A stretch of 11,171 nt of DNA from Selaginella moellendorffii. Its lineage: Eukaryota > Plantae > Lycopodiophyta. Shown here in pieces: positions 26 through 11,171 of this stretch; position 1 is the stretch's first letter; each line of letters begins with the position of its first letter. The DNA lies in the NCBI RefSeq assembly GCF_000143415.4, contig NW_003314578.1, positions 1 through 11,171 of the forward strand, in the 5' to 3' direction. The position numbers and the translations under genes are program-made. The notes under the pieces were generated by a model. It worked only from the letters and a program-made list of their open reading frames with translations, was not told where the DNA came from and searched no databases.

Positions 26-1111
26 ATGGCGGCATCGGTGGTAGCAGCCAAGGCCGGGCCATCGCTCCTCCAGCCCAAGCTCGATGCCTCTGCAGGATCG
101 TCCGCCAGCCTCCGCCCGGTGTCGGTGTCCAAGGCATTTGGATTGCGCAGCAATGGAGGAGGAGCGCGCCTCACTTGCTCCATGGAGGACATTGTCAAGA
201 GGGCCACGGATGTGGGCAAGGTCGCCGTTGCCACTGCCGCAGCCACATTGCTCGTCGCGGGGGTAAGCGAAAGATCTCCTCTGCTGGACGGATGAATTGA
301 GAGAATTGGAGCAAGTCTGGTAGTCATTCTCATGAATTTCCCCTGTTTTGTGATGCTCTAGACCGCCGCCGCGAATCCAAAGCGCCTCACATACGACGAG
401 GTCCAAGCCCAGACGTATCTCGAGGTGAAAGGCAGCGGCACCGCCAACCAGTGCCCGATCCTGTCCGGTGGCGACGAAGGATTCAAGTTCAAGCCCGGCA
501 GCTACAGCGTCAAGAAGTTTTGCCTCGAGCCCACGTCCTTCACCGTGAAGAAGGAGTCGCCATTCAAGGGTGGCGGCGATCAATACGTCGACACCAAGCT
601 CATGACGAGGCTGACATACACGCTGGACGAGATCGAGGCCGACTTGAGCGTGGACGAGAAGGGAAACCTCAAGCTGGTGGAGAAGGATGGCATCGACTAC
701 GCTGCGGTTACCGTCCAGCTCCCCGGAGGCGAGCGAGTTCCATTCCTCTTCACCATCAAGGAGCTCGTAGCGACTGGCTCCCCGGATGGATTCAGTGGAA
801 GCTTTCTGGTGCCGTCTTACAGGGGCTCCTCGTTTCTAGACCCCAAGGGACGCGGTGGATCCACCGGGTATGACAATGCGGTGGCGTTGCCGGCCGGAGG
901 CGCTGGTGACGAGGAGGAGCTCGGCAAGGAGAACCTCAAAGATACCTCGGGGTCGACTGGGAACATCACCTTGAAGGTGGCGGAGAGTAACACCGCCACT
1001 GGAGAGATTGCCGGGGTATTTGAGAGCATCCAGCCCTCGGACACGGATCTGGGATCGAAGGCTCCCAAGGAAGTGAAGATCCAAGGTATATGGTACGCGC
1101 AACTTGACTAA
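26..1111 (+). CDS. psbO: Photosystem II oxygen-evolving enhancer protein 1 (PsbO/OEE1, 33 kDa) precursor; exons 26..262 and 362..1111, ~328 aa
   Basis: Exon 2 encodes hallmark PsbO segments ([111 protein letters not shown]). Exon 1 is a Ser/Ala/basic-rich chloroplast transit peptide followed by a hydrophobic thylakoid signal. A phase-0 intron 263..361 (GTAAGC...TCTAG, 99 nt) joins LLVAG|TAAA-NPKRL, restoring the A-x-A lumenal cleavage site. Confidence 0.97.
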
Positions 1112-1389
1112 AGAAAGAGTCACAAAATCAGAGAGGAGAGATGATGTCCGGATGTTTGATCAGGAGAAAATCCTTGCATAAGAAGGCTGTCATCTTCTCA
1201 AACGAGCGATCTCACATTGTAAAGTCTCAAATCCTTTTTAAACTACAAAGCTGTTCCAAGATTCCATCTGTAGTAGCCAACGTTAAAATCAAATCACATT
1301 TTTCTCATCTGGAGCACAAGACTCTATGATATCACAATGGATTGAATCTTAACCGTCAGTTTGAACGGCCATGATCATTCTCTCTCACG

Positions 1390-1396
1390 TATAAAA
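1390..1396 (+). promoter_or_regulatory. Probable TATA box of polyubiquitin copy 1
   Basis: TATAAAA ~60 nt upstream of the leader-intron donor; TATAAA is kept at the matching position in copy 2 (9415..9420). Confidence 0.6.
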
Positions 1397-1450
1397 TAAA
1401 GGATAGGGTAAGGGTTTTCTACAATTCGTAGGCGGTGGTTGCGTTTCTTG

Positions 1451-2733
<1,283 letters not shown>

Positions 2734-3085
2734 GTTCTCTACTGTGAATGTAAGTAACCTCTCTTCCATGCAATAAAAAACGCACTGCCGCTTTCAACAC
2801 CATCTAATTGATGTCGACAAGGTGTCTAAATATAGTATCAGAGTTCTAAAGCTAAACCTCCAACCCATCTAGTTTGAGGTGGTTGTGCATAATAAACAGC
2901 AATAAAAGAAAAGAACATAATTATTAGTAATACACTTTGGGAAGTCATTGAGATGATTGTAACAAAAAAATGTTTTTAACCCTGTCCGTTTTAGGATTTT
3001 TCCACTTATACGTATAGAAGTCCCAGATGGCGTGACGAAAGTCCGCTGCAGAACTGGCGCATTCTTCCCAAAACCATGTAAGCTT

Positions 3086-5129
3086 TTATACAGCACCAGT
3101 TTTACATTGGCGATCTGCCTTAGTGACAGCGATAACAAGTGCTGCCACCCAGAAAATCACCACAACCACGTTAGCTATGGCCTCGTAAAGCATGGCTGAC
3201 CAGTGCCACTTTGGGAGATGGTCTCCCTCCACGAAATGTGGAACCTTTTCCTTGTAGTGAAGCAGCCCCTTGCGCTGTCCAGGCTTGTAGCTGGGCGGAC
3301 ACAAAATGTACACAATTGGTACAAGCATGTGTGTGCAAGTTGAAAGAAGAAAGAAGGACATTGCGATCACGTAAAAATCATGGCTGCAATTTCGGCCTCT
3401 TTGCTTCGCTACCCAGGAAATTCTGTAGGCCACCACTGCCAAGACCAGGAGTATGTAGATGATGTGAACCTTAACATGTTTGAGCTTGACAAGGAAAAAT
3501 TTGATCAAGGCTGGCTGCTTGGTGAACTTGGCCTGTGCCGCAACTCGATCGATGCTGCTTGTTGGAGTGAATGTGAAAGTGGAAGAGTACGAAAAGATGG
3601 ACTTGTATATGGTCTGGAGGAAGAAGGGTGTCATCCACCAGAAATGTGACTCGTCCCTGGATGGATTGTGGAAGACCGAGCCAGACTGAGATCCAAGAAA
3701 GGCGCCAGAAAATGAGGAAGATGGCGAGCTGGATGATAACACGCCGCGCCTCATGGGAGGTGCCGATCATGAGGTCCAAGTGAAGTGTAAGACAAACGAT
3801 GAAGAGGAGAAGCATAACAAGGTTGACGATTGCGATGAAGTAGTATCCCGTGTGCCAGAAGAAACTCACCTTGAGAACCAAGGAGAGTTTGCTCTTTGGC
3901 CCAAGCATCTCTCTCCATGTCGCAGAGAATTGCTGTATAGCTCCCTGGCACCACCGCTGCCGCTGCTTGATATATCCTTCAAACGTCCACGGTGTAAGAC
4001 CAATCTAACAATCAAAGGGGGAGTCAACAAAAGTCATCGTGTTTTGAGCAACAGCAGACCTGAAGCTTGCGGTTGAGGTAGACGGACTTGAAGCCCTGGT
4101 TGAAGAGCTTGAATGCGGTCATGGTGTCTTTTGTGATTGACATTGGCTGGAAGCCTCCAATCTCGTCCAGATGTTTCCTTCGGAAGATTGCTCCAGTTCC
4201 AACGCAGGGTGCGGCCCCAAATGTGTACCTGTGAATCATGACACGCTCGTGGCCAAATCCGCAAGCATCATTTAGAGGGTCTCCCACTGGCAGGTTAGAG
4301 GGATTTGCACGAATGACACTTTGGGGTCCTTCACTATGTGAGGGAGCAAAGTCTTCAAGAATGAGGGGTGAAGTATCATGTCTGCGTCCATCATCACCAC
4401 GAACTCCGCGTCAGAATGCTCCAGGCCGTAGTTAAGGTTACCGCATTTGAAGTTGTGTGGGACTCCTGGAATCTGCAACAGTGAGATCATGAGCACGCAC
4501 TGGGAAGGGAATAACAATATTGTAAGCTACCTTCTTTCTACGAAGATATTTGACACAAGCACTCTCCAATTCCTCACAGTATCGTTTTAGCTCATCGTCC
4601 CCTCCATCATCAAGGACCAAAACTCGAAACTGGTGCTTGGGACAATCCATGGCCAGGGCAGCCTGAATGGAATCCTCGGGAACGTCAGTGGGCTCTTTAT
4701 AGCAGGGAAGAAATATGTCAACCGTCGGAAGCTCTTCCCAATTCAACGATAAACACTGACGGGGCCGCCATATTCGAGGCGGTAACACCGGATCCGCAGC
4801 CGAAATAACGCTGCTCGCAAAGTATATCACCTCGCAAGTCGTCAAAACTATCAGCCACGGCCTCCTCGCGAGCTCTCCGGGATGTTTAGAGTAAACATAG
4901 ATCCTATAAACGAGGTAATTCACAAATGCAGCTATGTGTGTGCACAGACAAGGATGCAGATAATAGTGTGCCAGATTAGCTTCCCCCAATGTGGTGTCGA
5001 TGTTGGATGAAGAGAAGACGAATTGGATGAAGATGGAGAAGAAGAATCATGGGAATCGCTTGGATCACTAAGATCACTTGGTGGTGTCTCCTGCTGCCGC
5101 TGCAACTCAAGATCTTTAATGCTAGACAT
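3086..5129 (-). pseudogene. Frameshifted processive GT2 glycan synthase (cellulose synthase-like, BcsA/fungal type); exons 5129..4531, 4472..4060, 4004..3086
   Basis: Collinear paralog of 5393..7471 with the same two introns (4530..4473, 4059..4005). Relative to the intact paralog it has +2 nt in a (TG)4 run at 4935..4942 giving an immediate TAG, a 10-nt deletion at ~4297 (QIPQSFYN disrupted), an 11-nt deletion at ~3659, and TED changed to TKD (4129..4131). Confidence 0.9.
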
Positions 5130-5392
5130 GCTACTATCTTAATGAGTTTCCTTCGTTCCAGAGAATTTATTCGTGAGCATAATGTACTTTTCGTACAGCT
5201 GCATTTGTGTATGGTTGGTTGCTGTCTTGCAAATTGTGTCTTGATTCGTGTAAAGTTCCACTGAGAAGAGTTATTTCGTAAGGATGTTAAGAACTGCAAG
5301 CGAAAAACAAATATCATGTGTAAAAGTTAGCTAAATCTTCCGGTTTACATTGGTGAAATAAAGAAGTGGCATGTACAACGAAAGTTGATTGA

Positions 5393-7471
5393 CTATATAG
5401 CACCTGCCTTACACCAGCGTCGATCCGACTTGGTGACGATTATAACTAGGGCCGCCACCCAGAAGATACTCGTAGCAACGTTAGATATCCCCTCGTAAAA
5501 GATTATTGACCAGTGCCACTTTGGGAGATACTCTCCCTCCAGAAACTGTGGAACTCCTTCCTTGTAGTGAAGCAGTGACTTGCGCTCCCCAGGCTTGTAG
5601 CTAGGTGGGCACAAGATGTACATAATTGGTATAAGCATGTGTGCACAGGTGGAAAGTAGAAAAAACGATATGGCGATCACGTAGAAATCATTCTGGCAGT
5701 TTTTGCCACCTTGCTTGGCTATCCAATAAATCCTGTAGCCAACCACACCCAAAACCAGGAATATGTAGATAATGTGCACCCTTACGTGCTTGAGTTTCAC
5801 AAGGAACTTGATCACCGCTGGTTGCTTCTTGAGCTTGGCTTGTGCTGCAGCACGGTCAATGTTGCTTGTTGGAGTGAATGTAAAGGTGGAAGAGTATGAA
5901 AAGATCGACTTGTATATCGTTTTGAAAAAGTAGGGGGTCATCCACCAGAAATGTGACTCGTCCCGGTTGCGACTTTGGATTGACTGGGGAAGACCGAGCC
6001 ATACCGCGAACCAAGACAGGCGCCAGCAGATAAGAAGAGCTGAGACATTAATAAGAATGCGTCGGCTTTCATCAAAGGTGCCAACAATGAGGTCCAAGTT
6101 CAAGGTAAGGAGAATTATGAAGAGCAAGACCATAACAATGTTGAAAACTGAGATGAAGTAGTATCCGGTGTGCCAGAAGTAACACACCTTGAGTAGGAAT
6201 GAAAGCCTGCTCTTTGGCCCAAGCATCTCTCTCCATGTCGCAGAGAATTGTTGTATGGCTCCCTGGCACCACCGCTGCCGCTGCTTGATATATCCTTCAA
6301 ACGTCCACGGTGTAAGACCAATCTAACAATAAAAGGTGGAGTCAACAAAAGTCACCGTGTTTTGACCAACAGCAGACCTGAAGCTTGCGGTTGAGGTAGA
6401 CGGACTTGAAGCCCTGGTTGAAGAGCTTGAATGCGGTCATCGTGTCTTCTGTGATTGACATTGGCTGGAAGCCTCCAATCTCGTCCAGATGTTTCCGTCG
6501 GAAGATTGCTCCAGTTCCAACGCATGGTGCGGCCCCCAATGTGTCCCTGTGCACCATGGCGCGGTCATAGCCAAACCCGCTCGCATCATTTAGAGGATCC
6601 CCCACCGGAAGATTGTAAAACGACTGAGGTATTTGTACGAATGACACTTTGGGGTCTTTCACGATATGAGGGAGTAAAGTCTTCAGGAACGATGGGTGAA
6701 GTATCATGTCTGCGTCCATCATCACCACGAACTCCGCGTCGGAATGCTCCAGGCCGTAGTTAAGGTTACCGCATTTGAAGTTGTGTGGGACTCCTGGAAT
6801 CTGTAACAAATGGTCATGAAAAAAGAAATGTTATAAAAGTTAACCTTTTCTCGACGAAGATATCGGACCGAAGCACTCGGAGGCTCGACATGCTCCAATA
6901 CCTCACAGTATTGTTTCAGCTGGTCGTCCCCTCCATCATCCAGGACCAAAACGCGATACTGGTGCTTGGGATAATCCATAGCCAGGGCAGCCTGAATGGA
7001 ATCCTCTGGAACGTCAGTGGGCTCTTTGCAGCAGGGAAGAAATATATCAACCGTGGGGAGCTCTTCCCAATTCAATGACAAACTCTGACGGGGCCGCCAC
7101 ATGCGAGGTGGTAACACCAGATCCACAGCTGCAATAACGCTGTTCAGAAAGTATATCACCTCGCAGATCGACAAAATTATCAGCCAAGGCCTTCTCACGA
7201 GCTCGCGGGGCTGCTTGGAGTAGACATAGAACCTGTAACTGAGGTAATTCACAAATGCAGCTACGTGTGCTGAGACAAGGAGACAAATGATTGTGTGCCA
7301 GATTAGCTTTCCCCATGGAGATGCTTGAGGAGCAGCTAACACAGATGTGGATGATGAAGGAGAACTAGACAGAGACGAAGAAGAAGATTCATGGGGTGCA
7401 TTAGAATCACTATGGTCGCTAACATTATCACTTGGTTGCTGCTGCAACTCAAGATCCCCCACACTAGACAT
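5393..7471 (-). CDS. Processive family-2 glycosyltransferase (cellulose synthase superfamily, BcsA/fungal-like; candidate mixed-linkage glucan/arabinoglucan-type synthase); exons 7471..6845, 6800..6378, 6322..5393, ~659 aa
   Basis: Splicing two phase-0 GT-AG introns (44 and 55 nt) gives an uninterrupted ORF. It has two N-terminal hydrophobic helices, PTVDIFLPCCKEP, VLDDG, FKCGNLN, DAD, QIPQSFYN, CVGTGAIFRR, SITED and QRQRW (D,D,D,QxxRW signature), followed by several C-terminal hydrophobic helices. The product is inferred, not shown. Confidence 0.9.
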
Positions 7472-7529
7472 GATGCTGTGGGAGGAGGAATCACTGGAAC
7501 ATCTTACATATTCATGTTTGAAAGGGTTA

Positions 7530-7536
7530 TTATATA
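7530..7536 (-). promoter_or_regulatory. Possible TATA box of the intact GT2 gene
   Basis: TATATAA on the minus strand ~60 nt upstream of ATG 7471. Confidence 0.4.
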
Positions 7537-7940
7537 ACGTGCCATGTCCGTCCAGCTGTGCATTTTGGTTGAGCTGTCATTTTGTACATCATGGCGGCTT
7601 GTGAACAGAAACCAAACTTTTCAATACTAATCTATCTTAGAAAATATCCTAAGCACGGGACGATGTGTGAACAATTAAATAGAGGAATTGAATAAATGGC
7701 ACTCAGTTCATTGTGTAGATGCAAAGTAGTATTCAATGGAACATAAATGAGCTGACTGATGAACGTGCGAACAACCTTGACAGACCAGCTAATTCTTTAC
7801 ATGATCATAAGTGGATTACAATGGTCTCTTTGAATAATAAATCAGATGTGTATTAACGAAACAACTCCTCGGAAAACACTTGCATGTAATGGAGTGATGA
7901 AAGAGAGCTGTATAAACCTTGTTTACTTGTTGACATACTT

Positions 7941-8340: not shown

Positions 8341-8402
8341 AGAGAATTGGAGCAAGTCTGGTAGTCATTCTCATGAATTTCCCCTGTTTTTTTATGCTCT
8401 AG

Positions 8403-9152
8403 ACCGCCGCCGCGAATCCAAAGCGCCTCACATACGACGAGGTCCAAGCCCAGACGTATCTCGAGGTGAAAGGCAGCGGCACCGCCAACCAGTGCCCGAT
8501 CCTGTCCGGTGGCGACGAAGGATTCAAGTTCAAGCCCGGCAGCTACAGCGTCAAGAAGTTCTGCCTCGAGCCCACGTCCTTCACCGTGAAGAAGGAGTCG
8601 CCATTCAAGGGTGGCGGCGATCAATACGTCGACACCAAGCTCATGACGAGGCTGACATACACGCTGGACGAGATCGAGGCCGACTTGAGCGTGGACGAGA
8701 AGGGAAACCTCAAGCTGGTGGAGAAGGATGGCATCGACTACGCTGCGGTTACCGTCCAGCTCCCCGGAGGCGAGCGAGTTCCATTCCTCTTCACCATCAA
8801 GGAGCTCGTAGCGACTGGCTCCCCGGATGGATTCAGTGGAAGCTTTCTGGTGCCGTCTTACAGAGGCTCCTCGTTTCTAGACCCCAAGGGACGCGGTGGA
8901 TCCACCGGGTATGACAATGCGGTGGCGTTGCCGGCCGGAGGCGCTGGTGACGAGGAGGAGCTCGGCAAGGAGAACCTCAAAGATACCTCGGGGTCGACTG
9001 GGAACATCACCTTGAAGGTGGCCGAGAGTAACACCGCCACTGGAGAGATTGCCGGGGTGTTTGAGAGCATCCAGCCCTCGGACACGGATCTGGGATCCAA
9101 GGCTCCCAAGGAAGTGAAGATCCAAGGTATATGGTGCGCGCAACTTGACTAA
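8403..9152 (+). pseudogene. psbO: 5'-truncated psbO duplicate: exon 2 only, no start codon or transit peptide
   Basis: Open frame nearly identical to 362..1111 with intact acceptor (TCTAG 8398..8402), but exon 1 and the donor are absent. It carries a Y->C change in IWYAQ. Confidence 0.85.
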
Positions 9153-9544
9153 AGAAAGAGTCACAAAATCGAGAGGAGAGATGATGTCCGGATGTTTGAT
9201 CAGGAAAAAATCCTTGCATAAGAAGGCTGTCATCTTCTCAAACGAGCGATCTCACATTGTAAAGTCTCAAATCCTTTTTAAACTACAAAGCTATTCCAAG
9301 ATTCCATCTGTAGTAGACATCAAATCACATCTTGCCTAGATCAGCAATTTCAACGGTCACGATGGATTGAATCTTAGCCGTCAGTTTGAACGGCCATTAT
9401 CATTCTCTCTCAACTATAAACTAAAGGATAGGGTAAGGGTTTGCCACAATTCGTAGGTGGTGCGTTTCTTGGTGAGTGGGTATGGCGGTGTTGATTTCTT
9501 GCTTGAAATTCTCAAGGATTTCGTGATTGCCTTACCGGATCTGA

Positions 9545-10285
<741 letters not shown>

Positions 10286-10337
10286 GTAACCTCTCTTCCA
10301 TGTAATAAAGAACACACTGCCGCTTTCAACACCATCT

Positions 10338-10820
10338 CGAAGTTCTTCCCCATGCCCCTTGAGTTGGTATTTACCTAACCAGGCTGAATGTGTTGGAGTT
10401 GTGGAGGTGTATGCTGTGTGGAGATGTCAAGGTTTATGTTATCGGAGTTAAAAATGCCGAGTAGTAAGCCCATCACGTATGCCCACCACAGTCGCGCACA
10501 ACATCACCACTATTGTAGTTAACTTGTCGAAGCAAGTCTTCCAACCAGAATGACAGCTGATAGTCGTGGATAGCACGCAATTGTCCATCACCAAATCGCC
10601 CCTCAAACAAATCCTTCACGGTCACCATGCCGATGAGCAGGAAGCCCTGAACGTTATACATCGTGCCATTGTCTTTCATACGTTTGATGGTGTGGTACAG
10701 CTCGTCCAGGCAACATCAGGCTGGAAGTAGTAGAAGTCCCTGTGATAGCAGATGGCGTGACGAAAGTCCGCTGCAGAACTGACGCATTCTTCCCAAAACC
10801 CTTTAAACAAGACTTTATGT
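10338..10820 (-). pseudogene. Degenerate coding-like remnant of unknown family
   Basis: Minus-strand frames read as protein-like pieces (FWEECVSSAADFRHAICYHRDFYYFQP / LDELYHTIKRMKDNGTMYNVQGFLLIGMVTVKDLF...) separated by frameshifts, with balanced GC unlike the AT-rich counterpart in copy 1. No confident homolog recognised. Confidence 0.3.
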
Positions 10821-10826
10821 AAGCTT

Positions 10827-11171
10827 TTATACAGCACCAGTTTTACACCATTGGCGATCTGCCTTGGTGACAGCGATAACAAGTGCTGCCACCCAGAAAA
10901 TCACCACAACCACGTTAGCTATGGCCTCGTAAAACATGGCTGACCAGTGCCACTTTGGGAGATGGTCTCCCTCCACGAAATGTGGAACCTTTTCCTTGTA
11001 GTGAAGCAGCCCCTTGCGCTGCCCAGGCTTGTAGCTGGGCGGACACAAAATGTACACAATTGGTACAAGCATGTGTGTACAAGTTGAAAGAAGAAAGAAG
11101 GACATTGCGATCACGTAAAAATCATGGCTGCAATTTCGGCCTCTTTGCTTCGCTACCCAGGAAATTCTGTA
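10827..11171 (-). CDS. 3' end of a third GT2 glycan synthase copy (truncated by the window; functional status unknown)
   Basis: Near-identical to 3086..3427 and open to the stop at 10827. It retains the Trp codon (RQWCK) that is missing in 3086..5129 but present in the intact paralog (RRWCK). Confidence 0.8.
   Translation of the reverse strand, partial: YRISWVAKQRGRNCSHDFYVIAMSFFLLSTCTHMLVPIVYILCPPSYKPGQRKGLLHYKEKVPHFVEGDHLPKWHWSAMFYEAIANVVVVIFWVAALVIAVTKADRQWCKTGAV

Follow-up and report, generated by a model that had tools for sequence, protein, structure and literature searches.

The stretch of DNA analysed here (the window) is an entire scaffold of the lycophyte Selaginella moellendorffii, NW_003314578.1, of 11,171 bases. 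Its central feature is a GT2 synthase gene, copy B of a tandem family, whose full coding span lies at 5393-7471 on the minus strand and specifies a 659-residue product of the SmGT2A type. The feature is a genuine, intact plant nuclear gene with spliceosomal introns. With high confidence, it is one of the SmGT2A genes already described in this species, belongs to the streptophyte AGlcS/CslO clade whose sister is the ascomycete Tft1 clade, and would encode a membrane-embedded, processive and inverting BcsA-like GT2 enzyme.

Joining the three open stretches that run from 7471 to 5393 via two introns yields 659 residues with a single terminal stop. The spliced translation is, residue for residue, that of database protein P0051 (XP_002994516.1, EFJ04424.1 and UniRef D8TFZ5; LOC9641110, ‘glycosyltransferase, CAZy family GT2', Selaginella moellendorffii). 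All three exons are on the minus strand: (i) exon 1 (6845-7471; codons 1-209), which carries a disordered Ser-rich N-terminus, two putative N-terminal membrane helices and, with DDG, the first part of the GT-A domain; (ii) exon 2 (6378-6800; codons 210-350), which carries KCGNLN, DAD, GTGAIFRR and TED; (iii) exon 3 (5393-6322; codons 351-659 plus the stop), which carries QRQRW, interface helices, a modified gating-loop motif and five putative membrane helices. They are separated by intron 1 (6801-6844, 44 nt) and intron 2 (6323-6377, 55 nt), also on the minus strand, both of which are GT..AG and in phase 0, and both intron positions are common to copy B and the Selaginella paralogs P0325 and P0050. 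When the exons were searched singly, only exon 2 was given a Pfam family, with none for exons 1 and 3. In the ESM Atlas, exon 3 matched nothing but generic bacterial GT2 clusters, and as the query of an exhaustive search of representatives it recovered 23 relatives.

Transcript contigs from four runs (X1, X5, X6 and X7) of four studies were aligned to 2900-7700 of the window. The contig sets total 21-37 Mb, are transcriptome-like and include spliced forms, and within the aligned region their coverage is limited to 5356-7495. The 44-nt skip (6800 joined to 6845; CT..AC on the plus strand) was found in all four runs, and the 55-nt skip (6322 joined to 6378) in two of the four (X1 and X6). Both splice junctions are therefore proven for the gene, via near-identical alleles (98-99%) rather than the scaffold's own copy. 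In one X5 contig (record 5), exon 3 of copy B (5356-6322) is fused to exon 2 of the adjoining copy A (4060-4226); this contig either is a chimera assembled from paralogs or represents the transcript of a different member of the array.

The D, D, D, QxxRW pattern of processive membrane GT2 synthases (BcsA/CesA/HAS type) was found complete in the protein, with DDG starting at residue 178, KCGNLN at 218, DAD at 238, GTGAIFRR at 304, TED at 326 and QRQRW at 364. Across an alignment of 52 sequences, D178, D179, K218, G220, N221, E327, D328, Q364, R367 and W368 are invariant, and D238 and D240 are conserved in at least 90%. Between D179 and K218 lie 38 residues and between R311 and E327 lie 15; the corresponding numbers are 35-37 and 15 in the fungal relatives, and 26-43 and 15 in the bacterial ones. 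The compact architecture is genuine and characterises the family. The initial annotation, made from the letters alone, had described a complete synthase of ~659 residues with spacings of ~35 and ~15 residues at these two places, no N-terminal RING/zinc finger, and the compact build of BcsA, Tft1 and AGlcS rather than that of CesA or CslD/F/H/J. These points were borne out: the length and motifs are as given above, the first Cys is residue 63, the Ser-rich segment of residues 1-48 is disordered in the model, and the plant-conserved region (P-CR) and class-specific region (CSR) are absent.

Domain and fold comparisons point to the same type. In Pfam, P0051 matched general GT2 models plus a partial, two-piece Cellulose_synt model (PF03552; 61.9 bits), with no RING/zinc finger and no PilZ domain (PF07238). 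Its score against TIGR03030 (NCBIfam BcsA, CelA) was 209.6 bits, far below the equivalog cut-off of 699.1. Among solved structures in the Protein Data Bank, a sequence search placed Rhodobacter BcsA first (E 7.8e-41, collinear over residues 105-438), followed by E. coli BcsA (5e-31), with barley CslF6 at 2e-9 and plant CesA at only 1e-8 to 1e-10. The CesA matches came in pieces that straddle the CesA insertions, for example query 203-314 to 501-620 in one chain and query 316-425 to 768-879 in another. A confident AlphaFold (AF2) model computed from 52 relatives (mean predicted local distance difference test, 84; predicted template modelling score, 0.84) joins a GT-A domain to a membrane channel made of several helices, at 52-86, 95-118, 392-423, 433-459, 519-554, 559-587 and 622-646; these two N-terminal and five C-terminal helices are taken as membrane-spanning, around the GT-A domain. 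Foldseek ranked BcsA first (2.7e-24), then CesA (about 1e-14) and then CslF6 (2e-11), with HAS also among the top matches. BcsA (Rhodobacter 4HG6/4P00, E. coli 9B8V) is thus the top solved match by both sequence and fold and shares the catalytic motifs and the compact GT-A domain, yet the Selaginella protein lacks the PilZ domain that the bacterial relatives have, stands outside any BcsB partner context and has a gap of 101 residues, versus 84, between QxxRW and the gating region. Plant CesA and CslF6 have in common with it the superfamily, the D,D,D,QxxRW chemistry and a broadly similar membrane fold (TM-score about 0.6), but the Selaginella protein has neither zinc finger nor P-CR nor CSR, and its PF03552 match is no more than partial.

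Relatives were collected by a word-index search with the full protein, of which the best 120 matches, down to E 4e-39, were listed. The closest of these were Selaginella paralogs (79-99% identity). Next in order stood ferns, liverworts, mosses and the lycophyte Diphasiastrum, whose proteins are 47-57% identical along about 90% (>88%) of their length. Among them, the Physcomitrium patens protein (P0139) is collinear over its full length (49% identity, 97% coverage, E 1.2e-208). Relatives from Chara and Closterium followed at 34-39% identity, an ascomycete group at about 30% (E about 1e-68), and bacterial BcsA proteins with PilZ at E 1e-45 or weaker. Although the database contains those of Selaginella itself, no CesA or Csl appears among the 120 best matches listed.

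Two reference proteins were placed within this set by species, single-copy status, chromosome and length. Since Physcomitrium has a single such GT2 gene (Harholt 2012) and the homolog was located on CM009327.2 at 16.2 Mb, P0139 was taken as Pp3c12_24670, that is, AGlcS. Similarly, a search from a Penicillium member recovered the cluster of a 738-residue A. fumigatus protein (P0216). This protein was taken as Tft1, the fungus having only a single protein of the kind according to Samar et al. Two maximum-likelihood trees were then computed, one of 69 rows under a mixture model and one of 50 rows without long branches under LG+G4, with supports from the Shimodaira–Hasegawa-like approximate likelihood ratio test in quick searches. 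In both trees, the Selaginella clade had a support of 100, as did a land-plant clade that includes the Physcomitrium protein and lies apart from the fungal and bacterial relatives; the streptophyte clade was supported at 90 and 92, respectively, with the ascomycetes, including the 738-residue A. fumigatus protein, as its sister and the bacteria outside. The gene is thus a member of the AGlcS clade.

Two animal entries, P0073 and P0183, stood close to the fungal proteins. The one filed under the bdelloid rotifer Adineta steineri forms a long branch beside the fungi and may be a transfer. The one filed under the firefly Photinus pyralis is 63% identical to the Penicillium query P0186, with a Metarhizium protein (P0185) scoring equally, and looks like fungal contamination.

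The SmGT2A tandem genes and their pseudogenes were described in Selaginella by Harholt et al. (2012, PLoS One 7:e35846) and are the same thing as the gene in the window; the published arrays match those found here, with two genes on GL377689.1 and four gene models on GL377711.1. The clade was later named CslO and placed beside the Tft1 clade, with a fungal transfer being raised (Feng et al. 2023), and AGlcS relatives are reported in lycophytes (Roberts 2018, Plant Cell 30:1293, as relayed by later papers). Already in print, then, are the gene itself, the tandem family with its pseudogenes, the kinship with AGlcS and Tft1, and the idea of a role in mixed-linkage glucan synthesis. The initial reading is supported in part: its classification as a compact synthase of the BcsA/Tft1/AGlcS type is right but not new, and both trees recover the relation to AGlcS and Tft1. 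As to the accompanying proposal of an ancient or horizontally acquired origin, the introns are present, and the gene is not an acquisition specific to Selaginella: Chara, Closterium, liverworts, mosses, ferns and a second lycophyte have relatives as well.

Compared with Physcomitrium AGlcS, the Selaginella protein has the same Pfam pattern, motifs and spacing, in addition to the identity and the land-plant clade given above. It differs in falling outside the subclade of mosses plus Diphasiastrum, and its gene differs in having two introns, whereas the moss coding sequence is uninterrupted, and in occurring as several tandem copies versus a single moss copy. A. fumigatus Tft1 (XP_748682; Samar et al. 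2015), in the sister clade, has the same motifs, compact spacing (35 and 15) and, like the Selaginella protein, about seven predicted membrane helices. However, identity is only about 27-30%, the fungal proteins exceed the Selaginella one in length by 70-190 residues, the gating loop reads AFKPTGS versus TFTFTPTS, and the two introns of the A. fumigatus gene (after codons 81 and 321) fall in alignment columns unlike those of Selaginella (after codons 209 and 350). As intron positions differ between Selaginella and A. fumigatus and the moss coding sequence has no introns, the introns are uninformative on a common eukaryotic origin.

Several observations weigh against the assignment to the AGlcS/CslO clade as a BcsA-like synthase, or against parts of it. 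First, the identifications of P0139 as AGlcS and of P0216 as Tft1 have no accession match behind them. Second, neither tree contains CesA or Csl sequences, and the subclade of mosses plus Diphasiastrum (support 97) leaves out the Selaginella clade, so that a one-to-one orthologous relation to AGlcS was not recovered. Third, the gating-loop motif FxVTxK of BcsA and CesA is replaced in Selaginella by TFTFTPTS (P0051 residues 494-503; window about 5960-5990, minus strand). Most land-plant relatives have TFxFxPT at this place and ascomycetes have AFKPTGS. The lysine is lost across the eukaryotic clade, and the altered motif may matter functionally. Fourth, our literature search found no enzyme assay of any Selaginella member. 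Finally, none of the four transcript sets holds the scaffold's own allele: at 32 of 39 listed variant sites, the X5-X7 contigs match the letters of the copy on GL377689.1.

If the enzyme works as BcsA does, D178/D179 of DDG and D238-x-D240 would hold the UDP-sugar and the metal, and the aspartate of the TED motif (E327/D328) would serve as the catalytic base that deprotonates the acceptor hydroxyl. QRQRW would grip the end of the growing chain, and the polymer would be pushed out, sugar by sugar, through the enzyme's own membrane channel. This catalytic mechanism is inferred from homology to BcsA.

The product most likely belongs to the beta-glucan-type polymers and has mixed linkages. Two candidates have a precedent, mixed-linkage glucan in the sister clade and arabinoglucan in the gene's own clade; roughly, the former would be plausible, the latter rather unlikely, and a considerable remainder falls to something else. 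That the enzyme is the Selaginella (1,3;1,4)-beta-glucan synthase, in the manner of Tft1, is a reading to which we give tentative credence. As the initial annotation had pointed out, Selaginella walls contain mixed-linkage glucan while the genome is without CslF/H/J (Harholt 2012). The fungal sister clade holds Tft1, which is needed for mixed-linkage glucan in A. fumigatus (Samar et al. 2015), and the gene is transcribed, as seen from the contigs of a near-identical allele. Harholt 2012 left the mixed-linkage glucan unexplained and did not propose GT2A as its synthase. An AGlcS relative in this role has since been put forward in print (Chang 2023; Roberts 2018, as relayed by later papers). The initial proposal of a candidate glucan synthase thus fits a published hypothesis but is not new, SmGT2A having been described in 2012, the mixed-linkage role printed and the CslO clade named. 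Against this reading, the only characterised plant member, AGlcS, makes arabinoglucan and, in Roberts 2018 as relayed by later papers, gives no lichenase-releasable product; moreover, the role of Tft1 is supported by a knockout rather than by reconstitution.

That the enzyme instead makes arabinoglucan like Physcomitrium AGlcS is rather unlikely. Such a product would agree with the near full-length similarity to the Physcomitrium protein and with the fully supported land-plant clade that both share. Yet the Selaginella clade falls outside the subclade of mosses plus Diphasiastrum, and arabinoglucan has been reported from moss alone in the accessible literature.

Copy B lies in a repetitive locus. 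Downstream of it on the minus strand, a tandem paralog, copy A (3089-5129), is a pseudogene: relative to its intact 650-residue counterpart on GL377689.1, it carries three indels that shift the frame, close to 4941 (+2 nt), 4297 (-10 nt) and 3657 (-11 nt), and its TED has become TKD. A 402-residue gene model (P0001) is annotated on this pseudogene. A third GT2A copy, A' (10830-11171, minus strand), is represented by its 3′ end only, being cut by the scaffold end. On the plus strand are a PsbO gene (photosystem II manganese-stabilising protein; 26-1111), with a duplicate at about 8466-9152, and a polyubiquitin gene of five 228-nt units (1584-2733), with a duplicate of three units at 9595-10285. 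These neighbours make for an ordinary plant nuclear context, in keeping with the plant origin and spliceosomal introns claimed initially. The duplications belong to an 8,041-nt direct repeat (second copy at 8341-11148, first copy at 300-3404; no strand assigned), the two copies of which are 98-99% identical and comprise PsbO, polyubiquitin and a GT2A gene's 3′ end.

On GL377689.1, two tandem synthase genes, both intact, stand between these neighbours; GL377711.1 has four synthase gene models within the same flanks, one of them of 692 residues. Because the flanking genes of both arrays are the same (Lipase_3, Plus-3, polyubiquitin, two PsbO and TPR/DUF3493), the published two-gene and four-gene arrays look like two haplotypes of one locus that differ in copy number. 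The polyubiquitin products on the long scaffolds are of 306 residues (GL377689.1, 15121-16041) and 229 residues (GL377711.1, 23959-24648), and the polyubiquitin differences are copy-number variation of the 228-nt unit. The window is only 94-98% identical to either of these scaffolds, with a gene order different from each: PsbO and ubiquitin stand between synthase copies, an order absent from both GL377689.1 and GL377711.1. This order may be a genuine extra repeat or a product of assembly.

These features bear on whether copy B of this scaffold is a duplicate that is silent or an artefact. In that case the gene that functions would be the one on GL377689.1, 99% identical to it, and the 11-kb scaffold would be a fragment, unplaced or wrongly joined, of an array that varies in copy number. 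We consider this improbable, though it deserves serious weighing. It would account for the GL377689.1 letters in the X5-X7 contigs, for the near-identity of the two scaffold ends, for the gene order unlike that of both long scaffolds and for the broken state of the adjoining copy A. It would also account for the 3′ ends of the transcripts, as a 342-nt stretch of GL377689.1, beginning 37 nt beyond the stop codon, is absent from the window (deletion point 5355/5356), and the X1 and X5 contigs extend past 5356 into it. On the other hand, the frame of copy B is intact, all catalytic residues are kept and it is 99% identical to an expressed copy. The X1 contig, although it differs from the window, is the closest to it and agrees with it at most sites where the GL377689.1 copy differs. 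Moreover, assembled contigs drop rare variants, so that a missing own-allele contig does not demonstrate silence of the scaffold copy.

Contamination by a fungus or bacterium, or a recent transfer confined to Selaginella, is scarcely credible. The BcsA-like architecture, the fungal sister clade and the short introns might suggest it. Nevertheless, PsbO and polyubiquitin flank the genes both here and on two long Selaginella scaffolds, the relatives in charophytes, liverworts, mosses, lycophytes and ferns form a clade apart from fungi, and the intron positions are unlike those of A. fumigatus; genomic context and the distribution across taxa led to the rejection of both forms. It is similarly far-fetched that the protein is a divergent CslA, CslC or other canonical Csl. 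CslA and CslC are likewise compact, have neither zinc finger nor P-CR nor CSR, and are hit by the same broad GT2 models of Pfam. Against this stand the facts that none of the 120 best listed matches is a CesA or Csl while bacterial BcsA appears at E 1e-45, that Harholt 2012 lists Selaginella CslA, CslC and CslD apart from GT2A, and that Feng 2023 groups the CslO clade with CslP and non-plant CesAs.

For the enzyme behind the mixed-linkage glucan of Selaginella, a plant without CslF/H/J, the GT2A family is the published prime suspect rather than a new candidate put forward here. What is added is an exact, transcript-supported gene model, the difference between the scaffold copy and the transcribed allele, the finding that no clear one-to-one orthology links the Selaginella genes to AGlcS, and the shared flanks of the two published arrays. 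It is conceivable, if on balance doubtful, that GT2A, rather than being orthologous to the moss AGlcS, is a separate lineage-expanded branch, of haplotype-variable copy number, that gained true (1,3;1,4)-beta-glucan synthesis, with Diphasiastrum keeping the AGlcS-type branch. If so, mixed-linkage glucan in plants would go back to at least two origins in GT2 lineages that are unrelated, Tft1-like in Selaginella and CslF/H/J in grasses.

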